Assembly (NCBI RefSeq): GCF_006345805.1
Contig: NC_043014.1
Location: 50,158,001-50,222,000 of the forward strand
Origin: Octopus sinensis
Lineage: Eukaryota
Direction: 5' to 3'
DNA length: 64,000 bases
Under the pieces are notes generated by a model. The model did no database searches, was not told where the DNA came from, and was given only the letters and a program-made list of their open reading frames with translations. The position numbers and the translations under genes were made by a program. Shown here piece by piece: positions 6,301 to 61,370 of the stretch (its first letter is position 1; each line of letters starts with the position of its first letter).

Positions 6301-7278
6301 AAATGTAAGAACAGATGGAATACCACTAGGCATTTTACCTGGCGTGCCAACAATTCTACCACCTCACTGCCTTAATAATAACAAAACTATGTTCTTTGGA
6401 GTACGGGATTCAAGCCGCTTCTCCTTATCTCCTCAAAGACATACATCATCTCGAAATAGTCCAGAAGCTGGCTACCCGCATGGTTCTTGGTCTCAAGCAT
6501 TTGTCTTATGAAGAAAAGCTGAAGACGCTCGACCTTTATTCTCCAGAAAAATGCAGACGCCGTGGTGATCTCATTCTTGCTCACAACATCATAAGCGGAA
6601 AGTGTAACCTCTCGAAAGAGCTGTTCTTCACTCCTGCTCCAGAGCGTCGGCTGCGGGGTCACTCCGAAAAGCTCTATCTGCGACGATTTTATCTCAATCG
6701 AAGGAGAGGGGCTTTCTCCATCCGGGTTGCGGATCTGTGGAATAAGCTGCCGGACGAGATGGTGAAGATGCCGACGACCGCTCGGTTCAAAGTCTCCCTT
6801 GACCACAAATGGCCTGAACTCTTTGCATGAACACCACCCCGTACATAACTCCATGTCCCCCTACATGGTCTTGCGTTTTGCTTTTTGAGCCAAAAAATTA
6901 ACCTAACCTAACCTAACATAAAGCAAAACAGTTTTGTACATTCTTCAGTTAATGTTCTGCAACATGGAATATAAAGTACTTTCTGGTATTCCTCAGTTCA
7001 ATGTTCTGCTACATGCCACCCCATCACCAGCACAATGTAGTACGCCTAATATCAATATGCCAATATGCATCAGACAGGGTTCATGTTTTGGTCATAGCTC
7101 TGTTTAGCCACAACTGACTGGCAGGACTCGAAAGTATCAAAAACTTAAAAGAAGATATCAATTCAATTTTTACACAAGCTGATGTCTCCTCAGCGAAACG
7201 AAAAGATCCTCAAATTTGCCTTCAATAATACATGCCCAAGCCAATTATACTTGCACAAACAAATTTGACCGAGCATCA

Positions 7279-7336
<58 letters not shown>

Positions 7337-7499
7337 CGCAGGAGTGGCTGTGTGGTATGTAGCTTGTCTACCAACCACATGGTTCCGGGTTCAGTCCCAC
7401 TGCGTGGCAACTTCGGCAAGTGTCTTCTGCTATAGCCCCGGGCCGGCCAAAGCCTTGTGAGTGGATTTGGTAGACGGAAACTGAAAGAAGCCCGTCGTA

Positions 7500-7540
<41 letters not shown>

Positions 7541-7917
7541 GGTTGGCGTTAGGAAGGGCATCCAGCTGTAGAAACATTGCCAAATTAGACTGGAGCCTGG
7601 TGCAGCCTTCTGGCTTCCCAGAACCCCGGTTGAACCATCCAACCCATGCTAGCATGGAGAACGGACGTTAAACGACGATGATGATGATGACGATATATGT
7701 ATGTGTATGTATATGTTTGTGTGTCTGTGTTTGTTCCTCTAGCATTGCTTGACAACCGATGCTGGTGTGTTTATGTCCCCGTCACTTAGCGGTTTGGCAC
7801 AAGAGACCGATAGAATAAGTACTGGGCTTACAAAAGAATAAGTCCCGAGGTCGATTTGCTCGACTAAAGGCGGTGCTCCAGCACGGCCGCAGTCAAATGA
7901 CTGAAACAAGTAAAAGA

Positions 7918-8098: not shown

Positions 8099-11000
8099 CA
8101 ATGACAGTCACTTAAGCAATGTGAAAACTGTTTATAAATTTTTAGTTTAAATCTTTCAAAAAGGTCATCGTTTTCACAATTTCCCAAAAGACGGAAGATA
8201 TAAAACCATTATCAGCATACTGCTGCCATGATGTATGATTCCAAAAAACACAGAAGGGAGGAAGGTGGGCGGGACAATTGTTTGATTATCAGATTGTAGA
8301 CTGATACTGTGTCTAGTTTCTGGGTCAGAGTAGACTGTCTTTTTCAACATAATGATGAAATATATCTAAACTATCAAACACACAATCTAAATCACATTTC
8401 TCTCTCTCTCTCTCTCTCATCAAACCCAAATGATTCCTAGATTCGAGAGAGAGAGAGGGGGGTGCAAGAGAATAAGAGGGCAAGTGAGAGAGATTGCTAT
8501 TGGCTGCACCATCGTTAACATTATGTCCTTAAAATACAGAAAAGTTACTGCTCATGATGATTATGATGATGATGAGTGACTGACTTAACCAGATGTCATT
8601 TACAATAAATGCTTGTGTCAAATGTAAATTGCTCCATTTTCTCAGAAATAATAGCTCTTTGACCTTACAGATACCTAAAATTCCCACCAGGAGGTGAGTA
8701 GCAGAAAGAGGAAACAGAGAAAGGAAGGAGTAAGAGAAGAGAAATAAACACCATCACCACCACCACCACACCACCACCACCACTGCCTGCCTGCCCACAC
8801 AATGTAAGATTTAAGTGAAAATTAAATCATCCCCAGCCCATCGTTGATTGCAAGTTAGAAATGGTTGTATTGTTGGAAGTTAGAAGTGTTAGAAGACAGA
8901 GGAAGAGAAGTGGTAAAATAATAGAAAGTTTGGTTCATAACAACTTTGTTAGAGGACAAGGAGGAGACCGTGTGCCAAGTTAGCGGGGAAGGTGGGAAGG
9001 GATATACTTCGGAAACTAGATTCAGACAAGGCCACTACCAAAGATTCTAGCAAGTCAGTGTTACAACAGAAAATGGCATCATTATTTCTAATAAGGCTAG
9101 AAACAGTAGTGGGAGGAGAGTGGAGGTCGGTCAATACAAATGACCATCCTCCAACCCCCCAACCCCCACTGCCCTAAACCAATACTTGACTGGCAGTTTA
9201 TTTTAGTGAACCTCGAAAGGATGAAAGGCAAAGCTGATTTCCACAGGATTTGAACACACAGAAAAAAAAAAAAATTTTTTTAATTAAGAAAAATGTAGAG
9301 AGCAGAAAGAGATACTGCAATGCTCTAATGATTCTTCCAATCCATTGTTGGAAAAACAACAGGAGTTTTAGTAGAAGAGGATTTGAAACATTTGCAAGAA
9401 AGAGAAAAGTTTTGACACACATTACACATATATGTTACACATATGCAGCTTTCAGAAAAGAAAATGTTAAATATTCAATAAATGGTCAAGGCATTGCCCA
9501 TGAAATGTAATTTGTGACAAGAGCAACCGTTTGATTTCATACATAAGATATACCATATTTGCCTGCATATAAAACACACTTCTATTTCAAAAAAAGGTAA
9601 TTTGTGTGTGTGTGTGTATGGGGGATTTAGTATGTTTCATCATACATTACTGAAAGATATCTTAACCCTTTCAATACCAACCCGGCTGAAACCGCCTCTG
9701 GATCTCTAGTACAAATGTCTTGTTTTCATAAATTTTGAATTAAAACCTTCCACCAGACCTTAGTCACGATTAATGTTCCTAACACCAACTTAATGATAAC
9801 GAAGTTATTTTACTAAATTCTTTGTTATATTTAAAGTAACTGAAGGAAACACAGAGCATCTCAAAATAGATACGGTAATGAAGGGGTTAAAGTGGTTTTG
9901 TAGGGGAAAAGGTATGATTGTGTGTGCACGTAAATATGATGCTGTGACAGTAGAATGGAATAAAATATGAGCTTCAGTGGTCTGGAGTGCAGGCTTCAAA
10001 CCTGTAGCTGACTGACGTCAGAGTGGTTCAATTCCACCTTTCGGGCGAAGGACCGCCCCTGGGTCCTATTTTGTTTATCACACAAGAAAACCATCCGAAC
10101 GTGGCCACACACAAGAAAACCATCCGAACGTGGCCATAGCCAGTACCGCATCGACTGGCCTCCGTGCTGCGGGCACGTAACAAACACCATCCGATCGTGG
10201 ACATTCGCCAGCCTCATCTGGCACCTGTGTCGGTGGCACATAAAAACACCATCCGAGCGTGGCCGTTCGCCAGCCTCGTCTGGCACCTGTGTCAGTGGCA
10301 CATAAAAAACACCATCCGAGCGTGGCCGTTCGCCAGCCTCGTCTGGCACCTGTGTCAGTGGCACATAAAATCACCCACTACACTCTCGGAGTGGTTGGCG
10401 TTAGGAAGGGCATCCAGCTGTAGAAACACTGCCAGATCTGACTGGCCTGGTGCAGCCTTCGGGCTCCCCAGATCCCCAGTTGAACCGTCCAACCCATGCT
10501 CGCATGGAGAACGGATGCTAAATGATGATGATGATGATATATGTAACATGAATAAACCATGTTCTGTAAGTATTTCAATTTTTTTATATTGTCATCAACA
10601 CACTACACACAGCTGACAGACAGGCAGATGGAAGTTCAACATTCCTTTCACCTTACATTCAGACCAATTTAAAAGAAAGTTTCTTAACCCTTTCATTACT
10701 AACCCGGGCCGTACCCAGCCGAAAAAATTTTTTGTTCATAATACCAACCCGGTTGAGAGAACCTATTGTTATTTAAATGTAAATTTGAACCCAAATCTCG
10801 TTGGTACATTCGTTAAAACATGTGATTTCACTTTGTAAATAGTTGGCTTATAGTATCCGACATTGCTTGAAGTGATATCTCAACTCAGTGAATTTTGGGA
10901 GATTTTTTTCCACATTTTTTTCAGCATCGATTTTTCTTCAACTTTGAAAATGAATAGAAGTTTCATGTTATCAAGCATTGATTCCGAATTTAAAGCTTTT

Positions 11001-17000: not shown

Positions 17001-20000
17001 ATTATGGGTTTCTAAAAATAAAAGGTGTCATTACATTAAATACACAGAATTGTTTTCACAAAGCATCAAAATTCCAAGAAATTCTCTACAGTTTGGAAGA
17101 GCACAAATTATAGTCACAGAAAACATTAACTTTCTTTTTATTTCCAGAATTTATAAATACCGTGCTTATATGAAGGTGCACTATGCCTCATGTTTTTACT
17201 CATTTCTGTCAATGAACAGTGGCCATGCTGGAGCACTGCTTTGAAAGACTTAAACAAACTGACCTCCCCAGTACGTACTTTTTGGCTGGTACTTCAACGC
17301 TCTCTCTCACTGAATGCTAAATTACAAAGATGCAAACCAACACAGGCTGTCAAACAGTGGAGGTACAAACGCAATATATGTTTCCACGCAGTTTCTATCT
17401 ACAAAATTCACTCACAAGGGCTGGGTTGGCCCAGGGATATAGCAGAAGACATTTATCCAAGGTACCAATCAGTGGGATTAAACCCATCATCATCATCATC
17501 GTTTAACATCTGCTTTCCATGCTAGCATGGGTTGGATGTATGACTGAGGGCTGGCGAACCAGATGGCTGCACCAGGCTCCAATCTTGATCTGACAGAGTT
17601 TCTACAGCTGGATGCCCTTCCTAACGCCAACAACTCCGAGAGTGTAGTGGGTGTTTTTTACGTGCCACTGGCATGGGGGCCAATCAGGCGGTACTGGCAA
17701 TGACCTAACTCGAATCTTTTTACACATGCCACCAGCACAGGTGCCAGTAAGGCGACGTTGGTAACGATCACGCTCAAATGGTGCCCTTTTACGTGCCACT
17801 GGCACGGAAGCCTGTTGGCTGCTCTGGCAACGATCACGCTCGGATGGTGCTCTTGGCACCCTACTAGCACGGGCACAAGTACCAGTAATGTGACGCTGGT
17901 AACGATCACGCTCGAATGGTGCCTTTTTTAAGTGTGTGTACATAGTATTCTGAGCAAAAATGTTTGACAATTTTCTTCTGTTGACATTGCTATGCATCCA
18001 GCACTTCACTACAAGTTAATTTTGTTCTCTAGATACAATGAAGTGAAGGTCATTCACAGCTTCGTAAATGATCGAAGTTCAAGTGATCATTGGTACTGTC
18101 AGAAAAGGACAGGACACACTAAACAACATAATGTACTATAGTGTCTACACTACAACACCTAACTTCATAGTCCTACTAGATCAGGTTTGACCAAGAGCTA
18201 ATCATCAACATTACAAGCACTGAATAATAAGCCTGCAGGGGACAAAATATGGAGGCAGGGCTTTACCAAATCAATTTGTTTTCAATACCATTATTACAAA
18301 ATACCATATGTGTGTGTAGATTCATTCTTTTACTGGTTTAAGCCACTTGATTGCAGCCAGGCACCTTTAGTTGAACAATTCAACCCCAGGACTTATTCTT
18401 TGTAAACCTAGTACTTATTCTATCAGTCTCTTTTGCTGAACCGCTAAGTTACAGAGACGTAAACACATCAAAATCTGTTGCCAAGAGGTGTTGGGAGACA
18501 AACACACACATAGATATATGTACCTACATATATATATATATATATATATTATATGTATACAACAGGCTTCTTTCAGTCTACCAAATCCACTCGCGCAAGG
18601 ATTTGGTCGGCCTGAGGCTAAAGTAGGAGACACTTGCCCAAGGTGCCACACAGTGGGACTGAACCCAGAACTATGTGGTTGGTAAACAAGCTCCTTACCA
18701 CACTGCCACACCGTGCTAGATTTTTTAATTTTTTAAACCTTGAACCTCAAGACTCATAAGATCAATTTCCTGGTTTCCATGGTCTGTAAGTGACCAAGAT
18801 CGGAACATTTCCCCACAACGGAATGCAGTTCAGTTGCAAGGTTCAAGACCAACAATATTTTGAAGTGAAGTGGACAAGTTGATTTCACTGATTCTAGTAC
18901 TTGACATGTACTTTATTTTACCAACCCCGAAGAGATGAAAGGCAAAACTGACTCCAGTGGGATTTGAACACAATGTAAATAGCCAGAAGAAATGTTGCTA
19001 AGCATTTTGTTAGACATAACAATTCTGCCTGCTCTCTGCCTTAGGTGTAATATTGGCTTCAAATCTGGCACAAGGCCAGCAAGTTCGTGGGGAGGGGGGC
19101 AAGTTGATTACAACAGCCCCAAAAAGATGAAAAGCAAAGTCAACCTTGTGGAATTTGAACTTAGAATGTAAAGATGGATGAATTGCTACTAAGCATTTTA
19201 CCTGGCATACTAATGATTTTGCCAGCTTGCCGTCTTGATGATGACGATAAAATTATCAATAATAATGATTTGAAAATCTGCCAGTTCACTACCTTAAGCG
19301 TGAGGTGTAACATTACATCTATTTCACATCATGAGAGGAAGATGTAACACAGCAGTCAGGGACATTTCACTTCTCTCACCAAGAAATTTTTTACCTCATG
19401 TTAAACATTTTCAGCAGAATTTGTTATTAAACAAATTTATTTCTTAACTGACTTATTTTCAGCAATTAAAAGAAAAATATTTCAATAACAAATTTCAAAT
19501 TTTATAAATACAGGAAAATTAATCTAAAATCTTGGTTGTCATTAAATGTCAATTTAAAATATAAATCATTGTAGGTGAAAGTCAATATCTTCATTCTCTC
19601 GTGTTACCTCTAATATTTGAAATGCTTGAAATAGTCAAAACCTGACTCTAAAACCACATCAAGTACTCAATACAGCACAAGGTGAAGGACAAATAGACAA
19701 ATAAAACCAGTAAAAATTGGATAATTTCAGACCCTCTGGTTTTGTCTATTTGTGCTTTCACCTTGTGCTGTATTGAATACAAGATGTGGTTTTAGAGTCG
19801 GGTTTTGACTGCTATTTCAAGCATGGTGATATCTCTTTGACGCCCTTATTTATAATGTTAATAATTATAATAACCTATATAGTTTTTCACTTTCATACTG
19901 TCGCTTGATTGCTTTTTAAAATAATGATCTTATCCTTATTTATATAGTAATATTTGAAATGCATTATTAGCATTAAAAAAAAAAAAAGCAAAAAAAAACC

Positions 20001-23000: not shown

Positions 23001-26000
23001 ATATACACCATCTGCATTGCAGAACTATTTAACAACACACTAAGTTGTTAAATTCACTTCCATGATGTGTCAAAATTTGATTGATATATATATATAACAC
23101 TATTCTACATTTGGCTATAAAAGTAATGCAAAAAGAGCTCAATACACTTGAAAGAGCTTAATCTTAAAGCAGAACAGAGATCATCAGTTCTGAACAAATA
23201 TGTATGTGCACACGAAACTATTGGAGCTAGATACGTTCCCGTTACAGCACCCAAAAATATAATCTAACTACATAGATCAGTCAAAGCTCATCATTAAAAG
23301 AACCAAATAAGCTTCCGTCAACTACTGAAATATACTGATATTTCTAAAACCACATTAACCCTTTCGTTACTGTATTTATTTTGAGATGCTCTGTGTTTCT
23401 TTCAATTATTTTAGATGTAACAAAAAGTTTAGTAAAATAACTTCGTTATCATTAAAGCTAGTGTTAGGAACATAAATTGTGACTAAGGTTTGCTGGAAGA
23501 TTTTAATTCAAAACTTATGAAAACAAGACATTTGTACTACAGAGCCAGAGTCAGTTTTTCAGCCAGGGTGGTATCAAAAGGGTTAAGAATTGTTTCTCTA
23601 TTATATATTTTAACCCTTTCATTACTGTATTTATTTTGAGAAGCTCTGTGTTTCTCTCAATTACTTTAAATATAACAAAGAATTTAGTAAAATAACTTAG
23701 TTATCATTAAGCTAGTGATAGGAACATAAATTGTGACTAAGGTTTGGTGGAAGATTTTAATTCAAAATTTATGAAAACAAGACATTTGTACTAGAGATCC
23801 AGAGGCGGTTTCAGCCGGGTTGGTAACAAAAGGGTTAATCAACTACAACAATAATATGCATGATTTTTGCTATGGGTAAGTTTTGCTGTCTAATACTGGG
23901 AAGAAAATATATTCAAAACTGTTGAATAACTTGATAATTTAAAAAAGAATTTAAATTACACCTTTTGGTGTTAACTCAACTACATTGAAATTTTTTTTTT
24001 TTTATTATCCTGACTGTTTAAACCGGTCATATATGGCCCAAATACTCTACCTGTATTGTGTTCAAACTGGCCAGATCCAGCCTCTTACACCTACCCGACA
24101 ATGTTATTCTAAAAATTAACAGTCACATCATTGAAATCTCAAAGCTACAAGATAATGCATGATTAAATCAAAACAATGTGAACAAACAAGCATCACATTT
24201 GACAGAGCACCTCTGCATAGTTACTTGACCTGCTAAAAAATGCAAGCAAACCTCCTTCAAACTTACTCTCTACTATCTTCAGAAAGTAGAGAGACATTAG
24301 ACAATGTAGTCCTAGATAAGCAACATGCAAGTGAAAAGGTTGGTCATGGTCGGAACACCCTTGATCATAGGCCTACTCACTCAGGGCTAAACAACAACTA
24401 GTTCTCATCTATGTTTTTGTATTTGTGGCGTTAGGACGGGCATCCAGCCGTAGAAACATTGCCAGATCAAACTGGGCCTGGTGCAGCCTTCTGGCTTCCC
24501 AGACCCCAGTTGAACCGTCCAACCCATGCTAGCAAGGAAAGCGGACGCTAAACGATGATGATGATGATAATAAGTTTAGAAGATAGAGGTATGAATTACA
24601 TTTAGAGCTGAAGTGATAAGGAGCAAATATTTTCAACACGAGCTTAATATCTATCTATAGACATATACACACACTTTCAAATTCAATGCATACATATAAC
24701 AGTGCAACAAATATTAATGCATGCAGTGAATACAGTCAACTTTAGGACTGATTGTTCCTATATACACAAATATAACATTCAGCTGACAACAACGTTTAAA
24801 ATCAATATTCTTTATTGTCTTTATAGTTGATGTGTGTGTGTGTGTGTGTATAATACATACATACTTACACATATGTATACATACAAACATGCATGCAGAC
24901 AGACACACAAAAATTGGATGAAGACATGGAATTTAAATCTTTAGTTTTTTTAATATTAATTCTGACTGATGTAGTGTCTACACAAAACAAGAGAGAGAGA
25001 AAGAGATAGATAGAATGTGTGTTAAACTATTAGTTTATTTAGATCTATCTTTATCATATACACAGGGTGCGGTGAACAAACTGTCATCAAAATTACGCAA
25101 AGATGAAAATAACACCGACATCTCATTTTTTACTAAAATTACATAAAAATATCTTGAAATATTCAATAAAATTGCCATTGGCTTCGACCACAGCATCCAG
25201 ACAACTTCAGCATCTCCTGCAACTCTTCCGGACAGTCTCCTTGTTTAAGTTGGTGAATGCTGCCGTAATCCTTGCCTTCAATTCAAAGGAGTTTTGTTGG
25301 TCTCTTACTCAACTGCACCCCACACATAATAATCAAGGGGGATTGCAGTCTGGGGAGTTAGGTGGCCAGATGTTAGGGGTGAGGTGGTCGCAGAAATTGT
25401 CTGACACCATGACTGGGTCCTCCTGCTTGTATGGCATGGTGAAGAGTCCTATTGCCAGACATAGGGTCTTCCAGCAGCCACCCTCTTGACCCAAGGTAGC
25501 ACTACCTCCTCCAGGCACTTGATGTAGACCTCCGTGTTGAGTCTGAGGCTATGTGGGAAGATGAATGGAGGCATAACATCGCCATCACTAGTGATCTCTC
25601 CAAACATCATGATGTTGACTGGATGTTTGATTTTTATCGCTCTCGGTACATGTCCTCAGATTGACACCCAAACACTGAAATGTTCGTATTGGAGCTTCCA
25701 GCGTGAATGCCAAGCAGTGCAGCATGTTGTTTCCAAATTTCTGGCAATGCGAACTGCGCTGTGGTGCCGTTTTTCTCACAGACGATGCCCAACTGACCCT
25801 ACTATACTGTGTAGTCAACAAAATCATAAACAATGCGCCTGCACGAAATTAAGAGTATAAAATGGCAACAATTTACCCATCGCACCCTGTATATACATGT
25901 ACATAAAAATGAAAGCTATCTGGCAGACTTTTACAAAAAAAGAAGAGAAAATTCTTTCTTTAATAAAAGAAATTGTAACTTTTTATCCAACTGATAAGAG

Positions 26001-29785: not shown

Positions 29786-31805
29786 GCAATTGAGAGATAT
29801 TTACTTCTGGACCAATCAGAAGAACAAAAATGTGATTAAAAAACTATCTATTTTTTAATTAGAAATTTGAATATATAAAAAAAAAAAAATGTGTGACGAT
29901 TCAGGTTAAATCTGATTATATAAGAAATTGCGCAAATTAAAAATTATTCTAAAGTTTACTCTATAAAAAGAACAAAGCTGTTATTTAAAATTCAGTAAAG
30001 AAATTATCTAAATAAACAGCAAGTCATTAAGTCTAATAATCTTATTAGGCTTAACACAAAGCTCAACGGGCCATGATCTTGCCCAGATAGATGCATTTAA
30101 TTTATGGCCGTTTGTTGGGGTCTAATGTCACTCAAACACTCCAATACCCCCCACATCCACCCCACTAGAATGCAAGAGGACTAATAGCTCAACTAATGAC
30201 TTTTCAGATGATGTAAAATTTGCCACCATTGTATACTAAGAAGATATTCTAACTATTTTGTGCATGGTAGTCACATTTTCATGAAATGTGCTCGGCAGTT
30301 CTTGCTATGTAAGTGCAAATCCCAGCGTTTTATGGGTTAATTAAAAACCAATTCTAATATGCTTTTTGTTAATTATTTAGGTAATACTGAAAATATGCAA
30401 GAGTTCTACTTTAGTTCCATAATTTTTGTGTCCCTGAAGCCATTCCTACAGAAAGGATAAATATTTATAGAATAAGGTAAATTTTTTAATAAAAATGAGC
30501 TGAGTGGCTGTGTGGTAAGTAGCTTGCTAACCAACCACATGGTTCCGGGTTCAGTCCCACGGCGTGGCATCTTGGGCAAGTGTCTTCTGCTATAGCCCCG
30601 GGCCGACCAATGCCTTGTGAGTGGATTTGGTAGACGGAAACTGAAAGAAGCCTGTCGTATATATGTATGTGTGTGTGTTTGTGTGTCTGTCCTCCTAGCA
30701 TTGCTTGACAACCGGTGCTGGTGTGTTTGCGTCCCCGTCACTTAGTGGTTCGGCAAAAGAGACCGATAGAATAAGTACTGGGCTTACAAAGAATAAGTCC
30801 CGGGGTCGATTTGCTCGACTGAAGGCGGTGCTCCAGCATGGCCGCAGTCAAATGACTGAAAAGAGATAGATATAAAGATACCTAGTTGAGATATTAATAA
30901 ACAGAACCTCGAAATGCAATTCAAGGAGTAGTGCTCTCATCAGTTTTCCACTATCTACAATGGACTTATTGATATATTTTGAAGCTTTAATCTGCAAAGC
31001 TGATTCACTTAAAACAAATCATTCTCTTTGCTTTCCAACAGGTTTGAAAACTGCTCATAGACACTGTGACAGGACAAACAAGATCACAATATACTAGAAA
31101 AAGCTATTTTGATATCTATCAGTTTATCTACAAAAACAATTGGGAACCGAAGACAGTGACTAGAGTTTAAATTCTTCTAAATAAGAATCGTGCCCAAACA
31201 TCAAGGACTGACTCTGAAAAAATGGTTAGGCATTGACTGACAATCACAGTGTCTTCAATGGACCTCATACCCTACATTCCACCATTGGCTAAGCAATAGA
31301 GAGTTCATGTGATTTCAGGATATGTCAACTCTATATTCCATCACTGACATACCAACCAACCTAGACAAGGCTGACATTTGACTAACAGCAAAGCAAGATA
31401 GAATACCATCAACGGAGCACCAAATTAGCTTAAAATTTTAGAAGGAGGAGATTATGTTTATAGTTAAACAATTCGAATACATAATCATGCCTGCCAGCTA
31501 GCAGCAGCAACAACCACCTTTAATATTACTGTATTAGATGTAAAGTTCCTTTAAAACTGTTATTAAATATCAACTGATCGACCATTTAAATGATAGACGA
31601 TAATTCTTTCCATGATAGACCCGATTGTCTTTCTTTTTTCTTTGAGTGTGAGGTTTATTACTTCAACTCCAGTCCTCGAATGGTTTTATTTTATCAATAC
31701 TACCAGAAAGATGAAAGGCAAAGTTGATCTGAGCGAGATGTGAACTCAAAATCTAAAGAGCCAGAAGAAATACCGCTATGCATTCTGTCATTTCAGTCCA
31801 CTTCC

Positions 31806-31839
<34 letters not shown>

Positions 31840-32906
31840 TGATGATGATAATGTATAAATAAATAAAATGCCCAAAAGACCTTTGAGAGAAGAGAAATAG
31901 ATTAAAAGTACAACATTTGATAAAAAAAATTAAGGAGAATATATAAACCAACAATAAATCTTTATATTTTTTTTCAGGTACCAGAAGGAAATGCCTGCAG
32001 GAATAAGTGCTCATTAAATTTAGCAAGAGAGGTAAAGAATGGCTTGAAGAAGAATTTATAATTCCCTCAATTGTGTTATAGTTCTTACCAGATTCTTCAA
32101 TACTATCAGGTGAATCTATATGAATATGAAAAAAAAGTGGGAACAATTTCATTTTTAAATTTGATAAACAGCTAAAAATATATTTCTTAGTTACTGTGTT
32201 GTAGTACTAATTTTTCTGTTTTTTTCTTTTTTTTTCTTAATTCTTTTTACACTAAAAATAGGAAGTATCAAATGCCTAAAATACATGCTACATATATCAT
32301 ACATATACATGCAAAAACAATTTTTCAACGCTGAAATTATTAAATCTATTTTTAATGAAAATCTTATTTGTGTACTTCAAATCCAAAACATTAACATCAC
32401 ACAGCTCAAAAATCAAATCCAATTGTAAAACTAAACAGAACATTTTACAAATACAGTAATTTAAATAACATAACATAACATTAAATAACAGAAAATAATA
32501 CTTGGGTGATGATGAAATAAAAACTGTGTTGGAATCTAATGTCAAATATTCAGTTTTATAAGTTCATGCAACAAACAGGAGATAACTATTTTATATATAA
32601 CCTTTTTAACAACATTTCCAGCAAAAGACAATGGGAGGGAAACTAACACATTTAACCAATATTATGAGGAAATAAAAAGGTAAAACTTACGTTTTTTTGT
32701 CACAATAATCACAGGTCGTGGAGCTGAACCTCCAACTTTATTAACAGCTACAACTTGTACCTCGTAGTGTGTATCAGCTTTTAAGTTTGTAAGTAATGCA
32801 GAGGTCTTTCCTTCAACAGTCCTTGTCATATAGTCTCCATTTTCCTTACTGTTGTCAACTGCCCAGGGCTCTTTTTCTGTTATATGAACCTGTGTATGTC
32901 AAAGGT

Positions 32907-32937
<31 letters not shown>

Positions 32938-35900
32938 GCAAGGTTCAGATATCGCCACTTGCCAAGGGAACAAAAAAAAAAAAAGTACAAAGAAAATTGT
33001 AAGAAGGGTTCATGGAAATTTTCAAAACACATCCATAGGCGCAGGAGTGGCTGTGTGGTAAGTAGCTTGCTTACAAACCACATGGTTCCGGGTTCAGTTC
33101 CACTGCGTGGCACCTTGGGTATGTGTCTTCTACTACAGCCTCGGGCCAACCAAAGCCTTGTGAGTGGATTTTGGTAGACGGAAACTGAAAGAAGCCCGTC
33201 GTATATATGTACATATATATATGTGTGCGTGTTTGTGTGTCTGTATTTGTCCCCCAGCATTGCTTGACAACCAATGCTAGTGTGTTTATGTCCCCGTCAC
33301 TTAGCGGTTCGGCAAAAGAGACCGATAGAATAAGTATTGGGCTTACAAGGAATAAGTCCCGGGGTCGAGTTGCTCGATTAAAGGCGGTGCTCCAGCATGG
33401 CCGCAGTCAAATGACTGAAACAAGTAAAAGAGTAAGAGTAAATCAAAAGATACTGTCGAACTACCTGCATCAAGAACTACAAAACAAAAAAGTAAAAATG
33501 CTACAACATTACACCCTTTTGATATCCACCCTTCCTGAGGCCACCCCAGTTTCTCCAATATAAACATCCTACTTTAAAAGTGATCTAAATTAAAGCCATC
33601 CCTCAAAATTTTACATAAATTTATGTTCCAAAAGCTTGCTAATAATAACAAAGTTATTCCAACATATTCTTCATTATTCTCAAAATTAATTGAGACAAAG
33701 AGCTTGGTCAGCCAAGGCCTACAGTAGAATAACTTCTAGATACCGCACAGTAGGAATGAACCTGATAACACATGGTTAAGAAGTAAGCTTCTTAAACACT
33801 CTACCACGCCTATGTGTGTACATATACACACATGTATACACACATACATACATACACATATCCAATGCAAACTTATACGTATATACAAAACACAGATCCA
33901 CATATACATCGTAGTTTACTCACTTGCAAGTTGATCTAGAAATTAAACACCAAGAAAGTAACAAAACCAAACACGGAGAATGTTAACTTGAAAAACTTCA
34001 AGAGAATTCTTTACCATTCTGTATTGAATTGAATAGGACACTATATCTGCTCCACCAGTGCGGGGTTCGTCCCAAGTCACCCGGTAACTTTGCGGACTGG
34101 TTCCATATCTATTTGAGGTAATGATTACATCAAATGGTGCTCCTGAAATTTAATAGCAAAGTTAACAATGAACAGTATTTTCCCAAATGAACAAGGCAGA
34201 GAGGTGTGTGTGTGTGTGTGGTTGTGTGTGTGTGTGTGTGTGTGTGTGTGAGTGAGTGAGAGAGAGAGAAAGAGAGAGAGAGGAAAGAGAGAGGGTGGGG
34301 GTGGGGAATAAAATCATCTTTCTAATCCATTTTTAGGATCTTTTCGGTTTGAACGGCAGTTTTTTAAATAATTTCCACGTAACTAAACACTTTTAAACTT
34401 TGTATACAGGTAGAATGTGTTTAAAAAAAACATCTTTTTCTCTTGGCTTTATTGAGAAAATTCTATAGTTAGTAAGGTATTTGTTATTTTTCTTCAATTT
34501 CTGCAATTTCAACCAATCAATGACATCTATTGAGGTGAAAACATTTTGTGCCGTATGAATATGTCCCTTGTTTAAGAAACAGATTGGGTTTATTTACATT
34601 TCTGAAGAAAAAAAAGATACCCTTACCCCCACCCCTAACCAACTCTAACTAACCCTAAAACAGATTGAAATGCAACAGATCGATACTAGGGTCATAATTA
34701 TGGGTGACAATTTCATATGACACCGCTAGAAAAATCTGCCGTTCAAACAGAAAAGATCCCATTTTTACCCACACCACTCAATTTCAATTAGATTCAAGCG
34801 CATACTTCATGCAAGAAGCTCTCCACCTGATTCTCATGCTGGCACCGGCTGAACATGTTTTCTGTGACACTGGTTTATGGACTGATACTTTCCCTGCCGC
34901 CGACTCTTTTAGTCACCACTTTTGAACACAAAAAGACCCAGTGCACCAATTCTAAAATTGGGATTCACATATCCACACACACTTTCTAAATCAGGAGGAA
35001 GTGACTGTGTCCAATGGCCTTTGCAAAACTTTCCAGGCTACAGGTGAGGTTGATGCAATTGAAGCTTAAACAATTTCAGGCAATACACAGGTGGGAAGGT
35101 TGGGGATGACATGGTTGAAAGGAGAAGAGATGCATTAGGTGTGGGAGTATAAGAGCCAGCTACCTCTGAGGAACAGAATTCATTGTAGTGGCAGCAGCAA
35201 AGGTAGAATGAGAAAACAGCCAAGTCTGTAGGTCAGGTCAGGGTGTATTAGGTATGGTAATATAATGTTAATAAAGAAATCAATGGAAATTGTAGTTGTG
35301 ATCCCTGTGTCGGTGGCACGTAAAAAGCACCATCCGAACGTGGCCGATGCCAGCGCTGCCTTCCGTACCAGTGGCACGTAAAAAGCACCATCTGAACGTG
35401 GCCAATGCCAGCGCCGCCTTGACTGGCTTCTGTGCCGGTGGCACGTAAAAAACACCAATCCTATCATGGGCGTTGGCACATGAAAAGCACCCACTACACT
35501 CACAGAGTGGTTGGCGTTAGGAAGGGCATCCAGCTGTAGAAACACTGCCAGATTAGACTGGAGCCTGGTGCAGTTTCCTGGTTTCCCAGACCCCAGTCGA
35601 ACTGTCCAACCCATGCTAGCATGGAGAACAAATGTTACACGATGATGATGAAAAACTTGCAGAGAAGGGCTTAGTACAAGGCAATTAGACCCCATGTAAA
35701 TGTAGTAAAACTGAAATGATGTAAGAAAACTGATTGTTATGGGAGAAAATATAGAAGGGAAGAAAAGAAAAATTTACAGCAAATGCAAGCAGAGAAAACT
35801 ATGATTAAAATCTACTTACTAATATTAGGTGTCTCAGAAGATAAATCAACTGATGTTGTACTGAGTCCAACTCTGTTTCCAGCAAACACTTTTAGCTGAT

Positions 35901-37122: not shown

Positions 37123-40100
37123 TATATATGTGTGTGTGTTATAACATACAGACACAATGGGACTGAGTTTCCACCTACCAAACCAACTCGCAAGGATTTG
37201 ATCAGCCTAGGATTATAATAGAAGACATCTGCTTAACCCTTTCATTACTGTATTTATTTTGAGATGCTCTGTGTTTCTTTCAATTACTTTAAATATAACA
37301 AAGAATTTAGCAAAATAACTTAATGATCATTCAGCTAGTGTTAGGAACATAAATTGTGACTAAGGTTTGGAGGAAGATTTTAATTCAAAACTTATGAAAA
37401 CAAGACATTTGTACTACAGAGCCAGAGTCAGTTTCAGCTGGGTTGGTATCAAAAGGGTTAAGAATTGTTTCTCTATTATATATTTTAACCCTTTTGTTAC
37501 TGTATTTATTTTGAGATGCTCTCTGTTTCTTTCAATTATTTTAAATATAACAAAGAATTTAGTAAAATAACTTAATGATCATTCAGCTAGTGTTAGGAAC
37601 ATAAATTGTGACTAAGGTTTGGAGGAAGATTTTAATTCAAAACTTATGAAAACAAGACATTTGTACTACAGAGCCAGAGTCAGATTCAGTTTCAGCCGGG
37701 TTGGTAATGAACGGGTTAAAGTCCCACACAGTGAGACTGAATCAACAACTATGTGGTAAAACAAGTCATTTGTATAACATGAATTATTGTAGAAAAATAT
37801 AACTAACCAGTGACTGGGATATCTTTTTCTGTTTTCGTTTCACTGCCACTAGCAACCTGAGTGATATGGTATTGGGTGACAGGGATACCGCCATCACTCT
37901 CTGGAGGATTGATTACCAATGTGATAGTAGTTGGAGTGGGATCAAGTACATTGACTTTAGAAGGGCGTTTAGGAACAACTGTAAAAATTAGATGATACAT
38001 GCATATATATATATATATAAAACTGATGGAATATAACAAAAATACATACATAAATCTACATAGAGCAATACTTTAAAAATCTAAAATTTCAAATCTACAC
38101 AAGTTTATATTCATAGTATTCCATTCTAAAACTAAATAGTCACATCTTTGAAATGTCAAATCTACAAGATAATACAATTAGTTCAAATCAATGCTACTGA
38201 ATAAGCTTCGTACTTGACAGAGTCGTCTGAATGTTAAAGATCATTAAAGAGTAAGAAAATGGCAGAAAGCCCTAAGTAGCTGTTTAACAGAGTCTTAACC
38301 CTTTAGTGTTTAAACCGACCATATCAAGCCCAGAAATTCCACATGTTTTATATTCAAACTGGCAATATCTAGCCTCTCACACCTACCCTACAATGTCATT
38401 CTAAAAATAAACAATCACATCATTGAAACCTCAAAGCTCTAAGATAATGCATGATTAATTCAAAACAATTTGAGTGAAAAAGTATTACATTTAACAGAGT
38501 AATCTGAACACTAAAGGGTTAAAGAGTGGATGTGGAGGCGCAATGGCCCAGTGGTTAGGGCAGCGGACTCGCGGTCATAAGATCGCGGTTTCGATTCCCA
38601 GACCGGGCGTTGTGAGTGTTTATTGAGCGAAAACACCTAAAGTTCCACGAGGCTCCGGCAGGGGATGGTGGTGATCCCTGCTGTACTTTTTCACCACAAC
38701 TTTCTCTCACTCTTACTTCCTGTTTCTGTTGTACCTGTATTTCAAAGGACCGGCCCTGTCAATCTCTGTGTCACGCTGAATATCCCCGAGAACTACATTA
38801 AGGGTACACGTGTCTGTGGAGTGCTCAGCCACTTACACGTTAATTTCACGAGCAGGCTGTTCCGTTGATTCGGATCAACCGGAACTCTCATCGTCGTGAC
38901 CGACGGAGTGCTTCCACAAAGAGTGGATATCCACACCAGTCATTCCTGAACCACATAAAAGTATAAGTCAAATACAATTGTTGTTTAGGGACTAAAGACT
39001 AGAACTTAGTGCTCTTCTGTGCCAGAAGAAGCAACTTCATTTTGCAAAGAATTTTCTACCAAAAAGCCTCCAGTTTGCATCAGGTGTTATTTTTGCATTT
39101 TATCAAGTATATTTCTCAATTTTTTTCTTCTGCCTTCACCTTTAAAGTTTAACGACAGGAAATTCATCCAACATCGAGTTAGAATTTTATATTATTGTTA
39201 ATGATCGATTAGTTAATTATTTATAATTGATTTATCAATTTTTATTTATTCATGATTGAATTAGGAAATCGAAAACACTAATGTGTAATCAACTTAAGTG
39301 ATTAAGTGAAGGAACATGGCTCAGTGGTTTAGAGCATTGAGCTCACAATCATGAGGTAGCAAGTTCGATTCCTAGACTGAGCTGTATGCTGTGTTCCTGA
39401 GCAAGACATTTTATTTCACATTGCTCCAGTTCACTCAGCTGTAGAAATGAGTTGCGATGTCACTGGGGCAAAGCTGTATCAGTCTTTGCATTTCCCATGG
39501 ATAACATTGGTGATATAGAGAGGGGAGGCTGGTATGCATGGGTGACTGCTGGTGTTAATCCTGCCCAGACTTGTGCCTCAGAGGAGAACTTTCTAGCTGC
39601 AATCCCATGGTTATTCATGACCAAGGGGAGGGGATCTTTAATCAACTTTACTATATTAAAGTACCTTGGTAGAATTATATTTTCATGAATCTGGACTAAC
39701 TGTATTTGTGATTTATAAAGGCAAAAAAGGCACTACGTGATTTTAACAGTTAAAACATATCACACTATTTTCCTACACCATTAAAAACTCAGAAAATGAA
39801 TTTTCCCCAATACATTTCAGCAACTATTTTAGTCAAACAACAAAATTTTTTTTTTCCCTTTATTTCTTAGAATTAATGTGACTGAAATCAAACTATAAAC
39901 CATTACAATGAAATAGTGGACATATATGGACAAGGACAAGAAAACACTAAATGTCTCATAATTGATACAAGAAAGTAACATTTTAATGTAAAAAAAAAAA
40001 AAAAAAAAAATAAACAAACCTGCTTTCTTTAAAATTATTGTTATCTCAGATTCATCTCTGATGCTGAGAGCTATGCATTTATAGTCAGTGAATACAGACT

Positions 40101-43100
40101 TCTCGTTGCTAGGAGTCACCTTAACCTAACAAAAATAACAAAAATGTCAATAATACTGCACAGGAAGATTTTTTTAAATTCACATCCAATTTCCTAATAT
40201 TAGATATATTTCTTCAACGATGAAATAACTGCCAGCATTTTATTATTACCATTAAAGTCAATGCAATTTCCATATTGCACAACAACAACAACAACAACAT
40301 CATTAACATAGTGTTCCATCTGGAGTCATATATCAAGCAAACATATCTGTCTCAAGCGGAATCAATAAAGTTTTCATACACATTCGATAAATGTCTAAAA
40401 TGTATGGTCAGGCATAGTCATGTGTGTGTTTGTGTGTGCAGATATCCACAAGAAATAGGTCTGGAAATGTTGTTATGAAAAGAGGTCCTTTATGAATGTG
40501 AGAAATGCATAAGAGAAAGACAAACAAAGGGACCAAGTTTGAAGCAAACAATTATATATATTGGGGCTAAACATAGAAGGGACAAACAAGGACAGACAAA
40601 GGGATTAAGTCGATTACATCAACCCCAGTGCGTAACTGGTACTTAATTTATCGATCCCGAAAGGATGAAAGGCAAAGTCGACCTCAGCGGAATTTGAACT
40701 CAGAACACTTAACGGCAGACGAAATACGGCTACGCATTTTGCCCGGAGTGAGACTGAGGCAAAGTAGCCAGTCCATCAAATATAGTTGCCGAGATGGTGA
40801 CAACTGGCTGATGACTAGCTGATTGCTTGCATTGTCAAGTAGGTCATCTGTTTAGGGAGGTGTCAGGTTGGCAATGGCAACATGGGCAAAAGAGATGCTT
40901 TTGTGTGTGTTGACATCCTATAATTGTAAACAAGCATCTTGTCTTACATAGCATGATGTCAAAACAAAGAGACACGCGTGCATGAATTACACACACGCAT
41001 ATACTAACACTCAGTGCATATACTAACACTCAGTCGAAGGGTCCTTATCTTGTGAGTTACTTTGTGATGCTACAAATGCTGGAGTCATGAAAAAAAAAGC
41101 ACCCAGTACAGAGCATATACACACACACACACACGACAGGTTTTCTTTCAGTTTCCCACTATCAGATCCACTCACAAGGCTTTGACTGACCCAGTGCCAT
41201 AGTAGAAAGCACTTGCCTAAAGTATCATGCAGTGGGACTAAAGCCCAAATCGTACAGTTGGCAAGCAAACTTCTTAAGCACACAATCACGCTTGTGTAAC
41301 ATAAAATAGCAACTATATTTATCACAAACCCAAATTTCCAAATAGCACGTTAGATATGTTGATACTTACTTGAAGTAAGCTGGTCATCTGTTCTTGACCT
41401 TCTATTTTGAATATTTTATATGTGTCACTATCTCCAATATCATTCTTACCCCTTTTCCATGATATTATAGCTTTAGGATAACTTTTGGCAGTGCAAGTTA
41501 TGTTGGCTTTGTTGCCCATCCAATTGTAAGCAATTTTGGGGGTATTTATAAAAACAGGTTTATATTCAACCCTGAGGTAGGTTCGCTTGGCATCGTTACC
41601 AGCCTCATTATCTCCAATACAGGTGTAATTATCAGCATGCTCAGCTGTCAGAGAGGCAATGGTTAAAGTCAATTCTTTTTCTGGCTGATTCTTGGTTTCT
41701 TCAACTAATACTCCATTTGACTGTTAAAAGACATAAATAGTAAAGTAGAAAAATAAAGAATAACTCATTTTAATCAATAAATCGTGTGAAATTTCATTGT
41801 TAACCATTGCTAATTTTGCTAACCTTTTCACCAATAGGGAAAGGAGCATCGTTACTTCTTTGCCAGGTAAGTGATGGTACTGGAACACCTTTTCCTTTAC
41901 AAACTAAAGTGATTGATTCACCTTCTTTACCATCTTTAGTTTGAGGGATTTCAACTGTAGGAGGAACTGTAAAATAAAAAATAAAAAAAAAGAAATTTTG
42001 AATTTTGAAATGATTGAAGTTCAAATTTCGGTATTGAAAATGTTGGTTAACATTATTACAACACAACTTCACAAACTTAAAAAGAGGACCTAACATTCCT
42101 TAGCCTTTTCACTCCAGTCCATGTCACAGACAATCCCTACCAGAACATTATTCATCATCATCATCATTTAATATGCTCTTTACTCTTACTTGTTTCAGTC
42201 ATTCGACTGCGTCCATGCTGGAGCACCGCCTTTAGTCGAGCAAATCGACCCCGGGACTTATTCTATTGGTCTCTTTTGCTGAACAGCTAAGTGACGGGGA
42301 CATAAACACACCAGCATCAGTTGTCAAGCAATGCTAGGGGGACAAACACAAACACACACACGCATATATATATATATATATATATATATACGACAGGCTT
42401 CTTTCAGTTTCCGTCTACCAAATCCACTCACAAGGCATTGGTCGGCCCGGGGCTATAGCAGAAGACACTTGCCCAAGGTGCCACGCAGTGGGACTGAACC
42501 TGGAACCATGTGGTTGGTTAGCAAGCTACTTACCACACAGCCACTCCTGCGCCTATATAGTAATAAACAGAGAAAACAGAAGGTTTTATTTTAGTCCTAT
42601 CACATTGTGTCGCTAGTATACTGGAAATAGCTTAACCATCTGGGTTCCCACTGGCCTCCATGCCGGTGACACATAAAAAACACCATTCAAGCATGATCGT
42701 TACCAGCATCGCCTTACTGGCACCCGCACCCTATGTAAAAGATTTGAGCAAGGTCGTTGACAGTGTCGCTTGTCTGGCCCCGTGCCAGTGGCACGTAAAA
42801 GCACCCACTACACTCTCGGAGTGGTTGGCGTTAGGAAGGGCATCCAGCAATAGAAACTCTGCCAGACCAAGATTTGAAGCCTGGTGCAGCCATCTGGTTC
42901 GCCAGCCTTCAGTCACACGTCCAACCCATGCTAGCATGGAAAGCGGATGTTAAACGATGATGATGATGAACAACACATGCAGGGAAAATATAAAATACTA
43001 AAAACAGACAACTGATCACATTGCAGCTTTGTAATCAAATTGTATTTAGGACTCCTTGATAAGGGTGTGCCACACGGCTTGGGCTTTTTTTCTTTTTTGC

Positions 43101-46100
43101 TTTTAAAAGAAGGGGGTGTGATGATCCCAGCACTTTGTCTAGTAAACAAGCAAAGGACTAGAGTCACTGCAGTTGAAGAACTTATTGAGGACAAGTTTAC
43201 TCTTGTGCGGACAATGATTAAGACAAACAGGCGAAAGTGAAGAGGAAAATAGCAAATACAGTTGCTGAGAGATAGGCCTATTAATTATTGTCGGTGGTGG
43301 TGTTGTATACCTGAAGTTTTTTTTTTTTTGTGATTTTATGCATTGTTTGTCCGCAATCGTTACTCGAGTTGTGTATGCAACTATTTATATTTTTGTTTAG
43401 GATCCCAGGTGGAGGGTGAAGTTAGACACACGGGGGGGGGGGGGGTCCCCCAGATCAGAGAGTGTTAAACTTTGTAAAGCATACACGTTTCAATAAATAA
43501 TCAGTCATTATTATGGAAGGCAATTATATCAGATGCCATAATATATATTTCTTTACTACCCACAAGGGGCTAAACACAGAGGGGACAAACAAGGACAGAC
43601 AAAGGGATTAAGTCGATTACATCGACCCCAGTGCGTAACTGGTACTTAATTTATCGACCCCGAAAGGATGAAAGTTAAAGTCGACCTCGGCGGAATTTGA
43701 ACTCGGAACGTAACGACAGACGAAATACGGCTACGCATTTCGCCCGGCGTGCTAACGTTTCTGCCAGCTCGCCATTCTGATGCCATAATATAATTGATTC
43801 ATTCCTCAGCACCTGCAGCACACTTTTACAAACACCATAAATTTTAGGAAAAATCTCACTTACCAAGAATAGTTACTTGTGCAGTAGCAGTGTCATTGCC
43901 ACCAACATTAATTGCCATACATTTGTATTTGCCTCCATCACTTTTTTTTACATTGGACACCTTTAATTTACCACCAATGCTGTCAATTTCAAATCTCGGA
44001 TCTGTCAGTTCTTGATTATTCTATGCAGAAATTAAAATTAATTAGTTACATACAGTGCTTCTGTCAATAATAAGTTATTTAGTATAGAAAAATGAAAAAA
44101 AAGAAAATGTTCAAAACGCACCTTAAACCACATATATCGAGGATTAGGGTCTCCTGTAGCTTTGCAACTTAATGATAACTCTGACCCTTCAACAGGCTTA
44201 CTCACTTCTGGTGGCTTTGATATCTTGGGAGGTACTGCAAAGAGACAACACTCATACAGAAAAAGCAATCATAATATCTAAAGATTAGTATTGTTAGTAG
44301 TAGTAGCAGCAGCAGTAAATGAATCAATAAGAGAAAACCTTAATCCGTATCGATATCTACATGTGGAGATGCAAATTATTAGACAGATAATCAGCTAGCT
44401 TGAGATAGATAGATGGATGAACAGAGGGCTAACCATCTACTTAGCTAGCTAAATAGGTAGATAGGTATCTCTCTTTCTCTTTACTTGTTTCAGTCATTTG
44501 ACTGCGGCCATGCTGGAGCACCGCCTTTACTCGAGCAAATCAACCCTGGGACTTATTCTTTGTAAGCCCAGTACTTGTTCTATCGGTCTCTTTTGCCGGA
44601 CCGCTAAGTGACGGGGACGTAAACACACCAGCATCGGTTGTCAAGCAATGCTAGGGGGACAAACACAGACACACAAACATACACACATATATGTACATAT
44701 ATACGACAGGCTTCTTTCAGTTTCCGTCTACCAAATCCACTCACAAAGCATTGGTCGGCCCGGGGCTATAGCAGAAGACACTTGCCCAAGGTGCCACGCA
44801 GTGGGACTGAACCCGGAACCATGTGGTTGGTTAGCAAGCTACTTACCACACAGCAATTCCTGCGCCTTAGGGGTCCTAGGTATGTAGGCCATCATACAAT
44901 GGTTGTAAAAGCAATTGGAAAGACTCAATCTTGGACACATGCTTTGATTAAAAGACTTAATAGCCATTAGTGAAACTCATTTGATGAAAGATCAATTAGT
45001 TCCCCTAGCAGCCCTTTCAGCACGGAAGTTTTTGCTATGTTCCTGCCAAATGATTTAGTAATATTATAATTGAAGATGGTGTTTAGTTTAAGCAACAAGC
45101 TTCTGTACAATCTCTATCTACCCAACAACTCACAAAGCTTTAGCCAACTTGGAAAGACAGTTGTCCAAGGTGCTACACCATGGCTTTGAATATGTAATCA
45201 AGTGAGAGTGAAGTAAACTTCTCAAAGTGATTAAACCAAATTCGTTAGGGTTTCTTTACCCTTCCCTCCCATGTGTGTGTGTGAGACTGTTTTGACAGCA
45301 GTATCTATTTTTCAAACCAAAGTTTACTATTGGTATATACCTATTTCTTTATTACCCACAAGGGGCTAAACACAGAGGGGACAAACAAGGACAGACATAG
45401 GTATTAAGTCGGTTACATCGACCCCAGTGCGTAACTGGTACTTAATTTATCGACCCCGAAAGGATGAAAGGCAGTGTCAACCTCGGCGGAATTTGAACTC
45501 ACAACGTAACGACAGACGAAATACCGCTAAGCATTTCATCCGGCGTGCTAACATTTCTGCCAGCTCGCCGCCTTATTGGTATATACCCAAAGATTTTAGC
45601 ATCTGTAAATTAATGTAAAGAGAAAAAGAGCGGTGGGAGGGAAATGGTAGTGTAACTGAGAAGTTTGCTTTACGACCATGCGGTTTAGCTTTTAGTCCCA
45701 CTGTACAGCACCATGAGAAAGCATGTTATAACAATATCCCTGGGTGGCTGACCATTACTTTCAGAGTGAAATAGGTAGACAACAACTGTAGGAAGCTCAC
45801 TGCATAAATACGCGCGCAAACGTGTGTGTGTGTGTGTGCGCTTCCATGCGTGTGAATGTTGACATGTCACAGCTTCACTTATGCCGAATGTTATTTACAT
45901 TCCTTGTTGACATGACTAGTTACTCCTTCAAAACTGGTGGAATAAGTTATCTGTTTTCTTAGCAAACAAGTAACGGTTAGCAATAGTAAGAGTGTCAGGC
46001 TGTGAAATCCAGCCTCAAATATACCCACTTCCCTATTACCCACAAGGGGCCAAACACAGAGGTGACAAACAAGGACAGACATAGGTATTAAGTCGATTAC

Positions 46101-61055: not shown

Positions 61056-61327
61056 CTGAAAAACAAAAAGAAATCAACATATTAATTAAACATTCAAGCT
61101 TTAAAAATAAAGTAGGATACAAAATAAACTAAGATAAAAATTAAATTTAAAAACTTTGAACATAGGCGCAGGAGTGGCTGTGCGGTAAGTAGCTTGTTTA
61201 CCAACCACATGGCTCCGCGTTCAGTCTCACTGCGTGGCACCTTGGGCAAGTGTCTTCTACTATAGCCTCGGGCCGACCAAAGCCTTGTGAGTGGATTTGG
61301 TAGACGGAAACTGAAAAGAAGCCTGTC

Positions 61328-61370
<43 letters not shown>

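Follow-up and report, generated by a model that had tools for sequence, protein, structure and literature searches.

A truncated selenocysteine tRNA copy joined to the 3' end of an RTE-like LINE in Octopus sinensis: a probable chimeric retrocopy

Structure of the locus

We analysed a 64,000-nucleotide stretch of the Octopus sinensis genome (NC_043014.1, positions 50,158,001–50,222,000 of the forward strand; hereafter, the window), in which a selenocysteine tRNA (tRNA-Sec) sequence without its 5' end is followed by the 3' end of an RTE-like long interspersed nuclear element (LINE). The tRNA body is intact, it keeps its RNA polymerase III (Pol III) trailer, and both tRNA-Sec and LINE parts lie in the sense orientation on the plus strand. 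The composite probably arose by a single retrotransposition event. Its components, given in window positions, are as follows:

9965–9969 (no strand): candidate 5' target-site duplication (TSD), ATATG, the longest stretch shared exactly by the 5' boundary and the 3' flank
9967–10047 (+): tRNA-Sec remnant, tRNA positions 7–87, identified by Rfam RF01852, a pairing check and the B box
10048–10072 (+): unprocessed tRNA-Sec 3' trailer, a hairpin followed by the Pol III terminator TTTT
10073–10078 (+): six bases, GTTTAT, delimited by direct reading and sister-copy alignment
10079–10136 (+): start of the 5'-truncated LINE 3' untranslated region (UTR), an exact 29-bp duplication (CACACAAGAAAACCATCCGAACGTGGCCA, twice)
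10137–10370 (+): LINE 3' UTR minisatellite region, with ~63-bp units (3.2 copies at 10172–10370)
10371–10521 (+): conserved 3'-terminal LINE domain of ~150 bp, with a homologous tail at 54426–54570
10522–10538 (+): (GAT)n terminal trinucleotide repeat, which terminates every family copy
10539–10543 (no strand): candidate 3' TSD, ATATG, in a TA-rich target typical of the family

The tRNA-Sec remnant

An Rfam scan matched tRNA-Sec (RF01852; gathering score 47) at 9967–10040 on the plus strand (56.8 bits, E = 7.8e-09, model positions 7–85 of 91), and this was the sole Rfam family detected across the window. On direct reading the tRNA reaches the discriminator G at 10047, which gives 81 nt and bears out the initial annotation of a near-complete tRNA-Sec with a TCA anticodon (9996–9998) that lacks its first six bases. 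The remnant has G73 as its discriminator; the variable arm is 5 bp long, and the D stem, of 6 bp, includes a compensatory pair. The B box (GGTTCAATTCC, 10025–10035) is intact, and an A-box-like motif (TCAGTGG) is found in this copy without a 5' end.

Compared with the 9/4 cloverleaf, 24 of 24 base pairs outside acceptor pairs 1–6 are standard, whereas pairs 1–6 are all non-standard: TAAAAT, which stands at 9961–9966, is unable to pair with the 3' acceptor strand. A full 9/4 cloverleaf, which requires all 9 bp of the acceptor stem to be paired, does not form, and the folding energy of the remnant is −16.0 kcal/mol (−38.3 kcal/mol when a generic 5' end is supplied). ARAGORN called no tRNA at the remnant, as expected from the truncated acceptor stem. 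Because the 5' acceptor strand is missing, a tRNA fold is impossible and the locus is without function; it is most likely a dead copy and not a working gene.

Against a human tRNA-Sec sequence, two differences are both compensatory: a C-G pair of the D stem is U-A in the octopus remnant, and the variable arm CTGTC/GACAG is CTGAC/GTCAG, the latter arm having been described as compensatory in the initial annotation. Such lineage-specific compensatory pairs, together with the intact stems, indicate that the source was a functional tRNA-Sec gene and not a random look-alike; the tRNA-Sec core was absent from shuffled sequence. No displaced 5' piece resembling GCCCGGATGA was found upstream of the remnant with one mismatch allowed, nor is there a GCCCGG piece there. 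A split tRNA gene was rejected on this ground; ACCCGGCTGA at 9680–9689 is part of a 230-bp repeat and is consistent with chance.

The trailer and its junction with the LINE

The discriminator is followed by AAG, with no CCA. A 6-bp hairpin (AGGACC/GGTCCT, 10049–10067; −10.2 kcal/mol) and then TTTT (10069–10072) come next, in agreement with the arrangement noted initially. The TTTT is the only run of four or more T residues in the whole element and lies between the tRNA head and the LINE tail. A trailer that keeps its hairpin and T run, on a tRNA without CCA, points to a primary Pol III transcript or a genomic copy and not to a mature tRNA. For comparison we used two Octopus vulgaris loci (L001 and L002, 41 kb) that were reached through an open reading frame (ORF) in the LINE tail and that, with the window, make up 105 kb of octopus DNA; no sequence similar to the trailer was found elsewhere in the window or in these loci.

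The trailer ends in ...CCTATTTT and is followed by GTTTAT, which is not homologous to the LINE 3' UTR at the matching position of sister copies. LINE homology of the chimera begins at CACACAAG (10079), a point at which a sister copy (4379 onward) extends upstream as LINE 3' UTR. The tandem units and (GAT)n tail were thus correctly placed in the initial annotation, but the trailer is not joined to them directly, because the six bases intervene. They could be further trailer produced by read-through of the T run, non-templated bases added at a template jump, or flanking sequence of a parent locus.

Tandem Repeats Finder reported a period of 29 with 2.0 copies at 100% identity for 10079–10136, so that the duplication starts exactly at the trailer/LINE junction. 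The closest sister copy (4379) holds a single 29-bp unit, preceded by LINE sequence. The duplication could reflect stuttering of the reverse transcriptase (RT) at the end of its template, or later slippage, and it does not discriminate among the models considered below.

The LINE family that supplies the tail

Tail copies of this family are abundant. The window contains the motif GGCGTTAGGAAGGGCATCCAGCTGTAGAAAC 12 times, whereas shuffled sequence lacks it; the 12 copies in the window together with ~10 in the O. vulgaris loci amount to ~22 copies in the 105 kb. The tail ORF matches annotated O. vulgaris proteins. Each copy is built of a variable number of ~60-bp units, a conserved end of ~150 bp, and (GAT)n, a 3' terminus of short simple repeats present on all copies. 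Their 5' ends all differ, which marks them as typical 5'-truncated retrocopies. The tail of the chimera differs by 7.7% from the family majority consensus (family range 2.5–19%). Most of this difference is shared with sister copies, leaving a private divergence of ~2–3%, in keeping with an insertion of moderate age in which the tRNA stems have yet to decay.

A longer member lies at 52773–54570 on the plus strand. Decayed and internally deleted, this fragment contains an apurinic/apyrimidinic endonuclease (APE)-like region and an RVT_1-type RT and has kept a 3' UTR and tail of its own. Past the end of the ORF the sequence continues into a 3' UTR with GGCACGTAAAAAGCA units (54180–54300) and then into a diverged version of the conserved tail (54426–54570). 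Because this fragment runs into matching units and a matching tail, the tail of the chimera is a genuine LINE 3' end and the short copies are 5'-truncated progeny; the fragment represents the autonomous type of LINE that partners the abundant tail copies. A second decayed LINE copy with an APE-like endonuclease and an RVT_1 RT occupies 61886–64000 (+) and extends past the window end.

Endonuclease-like ORFs lie upstream of the RVT_1 ORF in both LINE fragments. Their matches to PF14529 are weak and below the cut-off (E = 0.03–0.04), and PDB and Pfam searches with the endonuclease pieces returned sub-threshold hints only. An APE-type endonuclease excludes the Dong/R4 class, which has a restriction-like endonuclease. 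The RTE-type 3' end proposed initially can accordingly be stated at two levels: the tail belongs to an APE-type LINE with a trinucleotide-repeat tail, and assignment of its parent to the RTE clade is plausible. The LINE also carries a C-terminal '...GRPRK...' motif that we take to be like that of RTE/BovB-type ORFs. The octopus element RTE-2_OV has repeat tails and a repeat-rich 3' UTR of ~600 nt (PMC9115989), and the trinucleotide tail and repeat-rich 3' UTR of the present LINE agree with this description.

Target site and flanking sequence

The 5-bp candidate TSD, ATATG, brackets the tRNA and LINE parts together, and a match of at least 5 bp has a probability of 0.083 over random 5' boundaries. 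When the LINE part is taken by itself, TAT (3 bp, P = 0.44) is the best match. The TSD evidence thus weakly favours a single insertion of the whole unit. ATATG overlaps the first three tRNA bases that are kept (ATG, positions 7–9), allowing up to 3 nt of microhomology at the junction. Microhomology of this sort is known at the 5' junctions of truncated L1 insertions. A longer imperfect duplication (ATGGAATAAAATATG versus ATGAATAAACCATG, the latter 9 bp past the tail) was set aside as a likely chance match in AT-rich DNA.

On manual reading, some family copies have no TSD at all, and the longest clean one measures 14 bp (copy 46863). The clearest example in the window is the tail copy at 46759–47019, with a 14-bp TSD (GTATCTTTAATTTA) showing that family copies arise by target-primed insertion. 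Tail copies often lie in or beside (TA)n (7282–7545, 55699–55745, and 56400–56900 in the window; 4918–4950 in L001; 18470–18488 in L002), and these targets include the (TA)n tails of an abundant tRNA-derived octopus short interspersed nuclear element (SINE). The pattern suggests that the LINE endonuclease prefers TA-repeat targets.

Upstream of the remnant, TAAATA at 9931–9936 falls exactly at −30/−25 relative to the would-be tRNA-Sec +1, and the A-rich GGGGAAAAGGTA (~9899–9912) falls near −55. By a rough estimate, such placement has a chance probability of ~0.1–0.2 in AT-rich DNA. No paralogous empty site was found, as the ~230-bp repeat on the 5' side stops at 9899, 66 bp before the junction. 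This repeat is unclassified, measures ~230–240 bp, and occurs at 9652–9899, 23346–23838 and 37233–37719 (both on the minus strand), 33513–33703, 60089–60238, and 10675–10707. Two of these occurrences are head-to-tail pairs ~20 bp apart, a single copy stands just 5' of the chimera, and the first 34 bp of the repeat reappear 136 bp 3' of it.

Copy number and sequence searches

The tRNA-Sec head is present on one of the ~22 tail copies and on none of the ~21 others, a result that bounds the tRNA-Sec-headed share at roughly ≤13% of the family and gives no absolute count. No other match to tRNA-Sec or its trailer was found in the window or in the 41 kb of O. vulgaris DNA.

Searches of wider collections returned no relative of the chimera. 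Two ORFs that span it had no exact match among public assemblies, and a homology search with a 47-aa peptide (the 3' half of tRNA-Sec, the trailer, and the first LINE unit) gave no candidate. A full HMMER scan of 1.84 billion representative proteins produced one match, a translated satellite unrelated to tRNA-Sec. An ORF covering a sister copy was found neither among 5.8 billion proteins nor among the 1.84 billion representatives, which is a weak test. A pattern of the variable arm plus T arm had no match in metagenome contigs, and a tail motif pattern had none in metagenome or prokaryotic genome contigs. The Secmarker supplements hold no cephalopod entries, and our literature search turned up neither a SINE headed by tRNA-Sec nor any account of tRNA-Sec copies in cephalopods.

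Origin of the composite

We consider it probable that the locus is a one-off chimeric retrocopy, dead on arrival and outside any new repeat family, made in one retrotransposition event from a composite of pre-tRNA-Sec and LINE 3'-end RNA. A small Pol III RNA stands in sense directly 5' of a 5'-truncated LINE 3' end, and a single event is the most economical account because it explains at once the trailer-bearing tRNA copy, the adjoining tail in the same sense, the lost tRNA 5' end, and a TSD around both parts. RTE-type enzymes require their own 3' end (Kojima 2018, PMC5786205), which would explain why a tRNA-Sec retrocopy lies exactly upstream of a LINE tail. On this model, an octopus tRNA-Sec precursor with its 3' trailer and no CCA would have been joined in sense to the last ~460 nt of an RTE-like LINE RNA, and a single round of target-primed reverse transcription would have inserted the composite at a TA-rich site. 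Reverse transcription would have started in the (GAT)n tail, copied the LINE 3' UTR, and gone on to the pre-tRNA-Sec, whether the enzyme jumped templates at the 5' end of a broken LINE RNA or the two RNAs already formed one molecule. The first six bases of the tRNA would have remained uncopied, a loss that we ascribe to incomplete reverse transcription and that is common among retrocopies, and the cDNA may have joined the target through 0–3 nt of microhomology (ATG).

The two RNAs could have been brought together by three routes. If the RT left the broken LINE RNA and resumed at the 3' end of the pre-tRNA, by a template jump, GTTTAT would be either read-through trailer or non-templated sequence. 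Alternatively, RNA ligation may have preceded reverse transcription, as for U6/L1 (PMC6789731), or read-through transcription of a parent tRNA-Sec locus, with a LINE tail already in place downstream, may have produced the composite.

Several observations weigh against a single event. The ATATG duplication is just 5 bp long and AT-rich and could have arisen by chance. GTTTAT separates the T run from the LINE, whereas clean termination at TTTT followed by direct joining would leave no extra bases. TAAATA and GGGGAAAAGGTA sit where the TATA box and proximal sequence element (PSE) of a native type-3 Pol III gene would be, which may be coincidence. The captured pre-tRNA-Sec, or U6/L1-like chimera, of the initial annotation is therefore the explanation best supported by the sense orientation, trailer, missing CCA, truncations, and TSD, and it falls short of proof because the TSD is only 5 bp.

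The chief alternative is an origin in two independent events, in which a resident tRNA-Sec gene or DNA-level pseudogene was already in place and a 5'-truncated LINE later inserted 31 bp downstream. The LINE would have landed in a TA-rich flank (...TTTTGTTTAT^ATATG...), and a separate lesion would have replaced or removed the first six tRNA bases. Besides TAAATA and the A-rich block, this history gains from the fact that GTTTAT and the 3' flank (ATATGTAAC...) can be read as one continuous AT-rich gene flank, that the LINE prefers TA-rich targets and its tail copies are dense (~1 per 5 kb), and that short or absent TSDs are common in the family, so that a 3-bp TSD is possible. It nevertheless needs two unrelated events within 120 bp, and by our own estimate a LINE 5' end would fall within ~30 bp of a given point in ~0.6% of cases at ~1 tail per 5 kb. 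No simple mutation turns GCCCGG into TAAAAT while the next 81 bases keep every stem, no displaced 5' piece was found upstream, and the duplication around the LINE alone is 3 bp (P = 0.44, above). A disabled native gene would, moreover, demand a second functional tRNA-Sec gene. On balance we regard two events as unlikely. A functional tRNA-Sec gene with a misassembled 5' end would also account for the pristine body, discriminator, trailer, and terminator and for the TATA-like hexamer at −30. This is extremely improbable, given that TAAAAT is clean and non-repetitive with no gap or N, that a precise six-base substitution is not expected of an assembly error, and that the LINE tail 31 bp downstream would be the same in both cases.

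The remaining alternative treats the tRNA-Sec, trailer, and LINE tail as a transcribed master, a SINE or proto-SINE, with the chimera as one 5'-truncated retrocopy among several; an example would be a real tRNA-Sec locus with a LINE tail 31 bp downstream, where Pol III passes a weak TTTT. RTE-type LINEs have repeatedly yielded SINEs with tRNA or 5S heads, cephalopods included (PMC5786205), the B box is intact, the best TSD brackets the whole unit, and the 3' end is shared with the partner LINE at 52773–54570. Read-through at a parent locus would also make GTTTAT parental flank. Yet the head is missing from the ~21 other tail copies, the present copy is 5'-truncated, and the TTTT between head and tail is an internal terminator at which Pol III would halt ahead of the LINE recognition sequence. 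The tRNA-Sec-headed SINE that the initial annotation had offered as an alternative thus lacks positive support. The empty results for an ORF over a sister copy in protein collections, a weak test, and for such a SINE in the literature point the same way. Further, tRNA-Sec genes depend on upstream PSE and TATA elements for transcription, and a retrocopy does not carry these. We judge a transcribed master of this kind distinctly unlikely. More specifically, the chimera could be a retrocopy of a nascent SINE: a tRNA-Sec locus would have gained a LINE tail just past a weak TTTT, and the LINE enzyme would mobilise read-through transcripts started at the external type-3 promoter of the gene. This appears quite improbable; if true, it would imply a small family headed by an opal-decoding tRNA-Sec, which no SINE in the literature searched is reported to have.

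Comparison with known chimeric retrocopies and SINEs

A chimeric retrocopy of this kind has counterparts in the small-RNA/LINE-1 chimeric retropseudogenes of mammals, whose partner is U6 or, more rarely, tRNA, mostly as antisense halves (PMC6789731, PMC4476161, PMC11838501). As in U6/L1, a sense Pol III transcript that ends at or near a U-tract is combined with a variably 5'-truncated LINE 3' end in a dead-on-arrival unit that would have been inserted whole. The octopus LINE is APE-type and RTE-like with a (GAT)n tail, in contrast to the poly(A) tail of L1; the small RNA has lost 6 nt from its 5' end, while U6 as a rule is full length; and the octopus junction has six extra bases. The U6 route also uses a 2',3'-cyclic phosphate end, which is not known for pre-tRNA. 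Unlike the L1/tRNA chimeras, which mostly contain mature antisense tRNA halves, the octopus partner is a sense tRNA precursor.

In Magnaporthe grisea, (double) template jumps by a LINE produced tripartite chimeric retrogenes (PMC2104539). There too a non-L1 LINE joins copies of cellular RNAs to its own 5'-truncated 3' end. The kingdom, the LINE, and the partner RNAs differ, and the octopus chimera shows just two parts, although its exact 29-bp duplication at the junction could be a second jump. Human TRNAU2 is a tRNA-Sec retropseudogene that is not bound by Pol III (PMC5330540) and is likewise a retro-derived, non-functional copy of a normally single-copy tRNA-Sec gene. TRNAU2 matches the gene over the mature tRNA only and has a mutated discriminator. 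In the octopus copy, by contrast, G73 and the trailer of the precursor are retained, the 5' end is missing, and a LINE tail is attached.

The tRNA-headed SINEs with RTE-derived tails (Bov-tA, AfroSINEs, and Ceph-SINEs; Kojima 2018, PMC5786205) are built like the octopus locus, with a tRNA-related head and, after it, the 3' end of an RTE-type LINE, and the chimera resembles their starting raw material. These SINEs form multi-copy families in which the promoter is internal (type 2), the head/body junction is fixed, and no terminator lies inside the unit; the octopus chimera is one truncated copy with an external-promoter head and TTTT between head and tail. The type of event is thus already known, and what differs is the LINE type, the host, and the partner RNA, a sense precursor tRNA.

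Other features of the window

The abundant tRNA-derived SINE mentioned above begins with GGCGCAGGAGTGGCTGTGTGGT..., ends with ...GAAAGAAGCCCGTCGTATATAT(TA)n, and is unrelated to the tRNA-Sec remnant. Its many copies include those at 7330–7500 (+), 42390–42570 (−), 18415–18711, 30406–30741, 32880–33260, 44638–44970, and 61094–61426. Two immunoglobulin (Ig)-domain exons on the minus strand (41322–41672 and 41800–42096; Pfam Ig_3/I-set) come from a real gene. The best public match of the Ig exon is an orthologous 2-kb contig covering exon and intron at 83% identity (Logan SRR11869384, our locus L003) from another octopod, and no annotated octopus protein was retrieved for these exons. By eye, an ORF at 6396–6830 (+) resembles the C-terminal region of a CR1/jockey-type RT and one at 49875–50192 (+) resembles the N-terminus of a mariner-type transposase; neither has a Pfam match.

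Implications

Knowledge of selenocysteine decoding is unaffected by this locus. If the chimera is a single insertion, the empty site would read ...GGAATAAAATATGTAACATG... with one ATATG, and the locus would serve as a clean presence/absence marker for octopod phylogeny. The chimera would also preserve the sequence that the 3' trailer of the octopus tRNA-Sec gene had when the insertion took place. More generally, it would record the ability of a mollusc RTE-like LINE without a poly(A) tail to copy its own 3' end jointly with a Pol III precursor, and such co-copying would be the first step assumed in models for the origin of tRNA-headed, RTE-tailed SINEs, including those of cephalopods.

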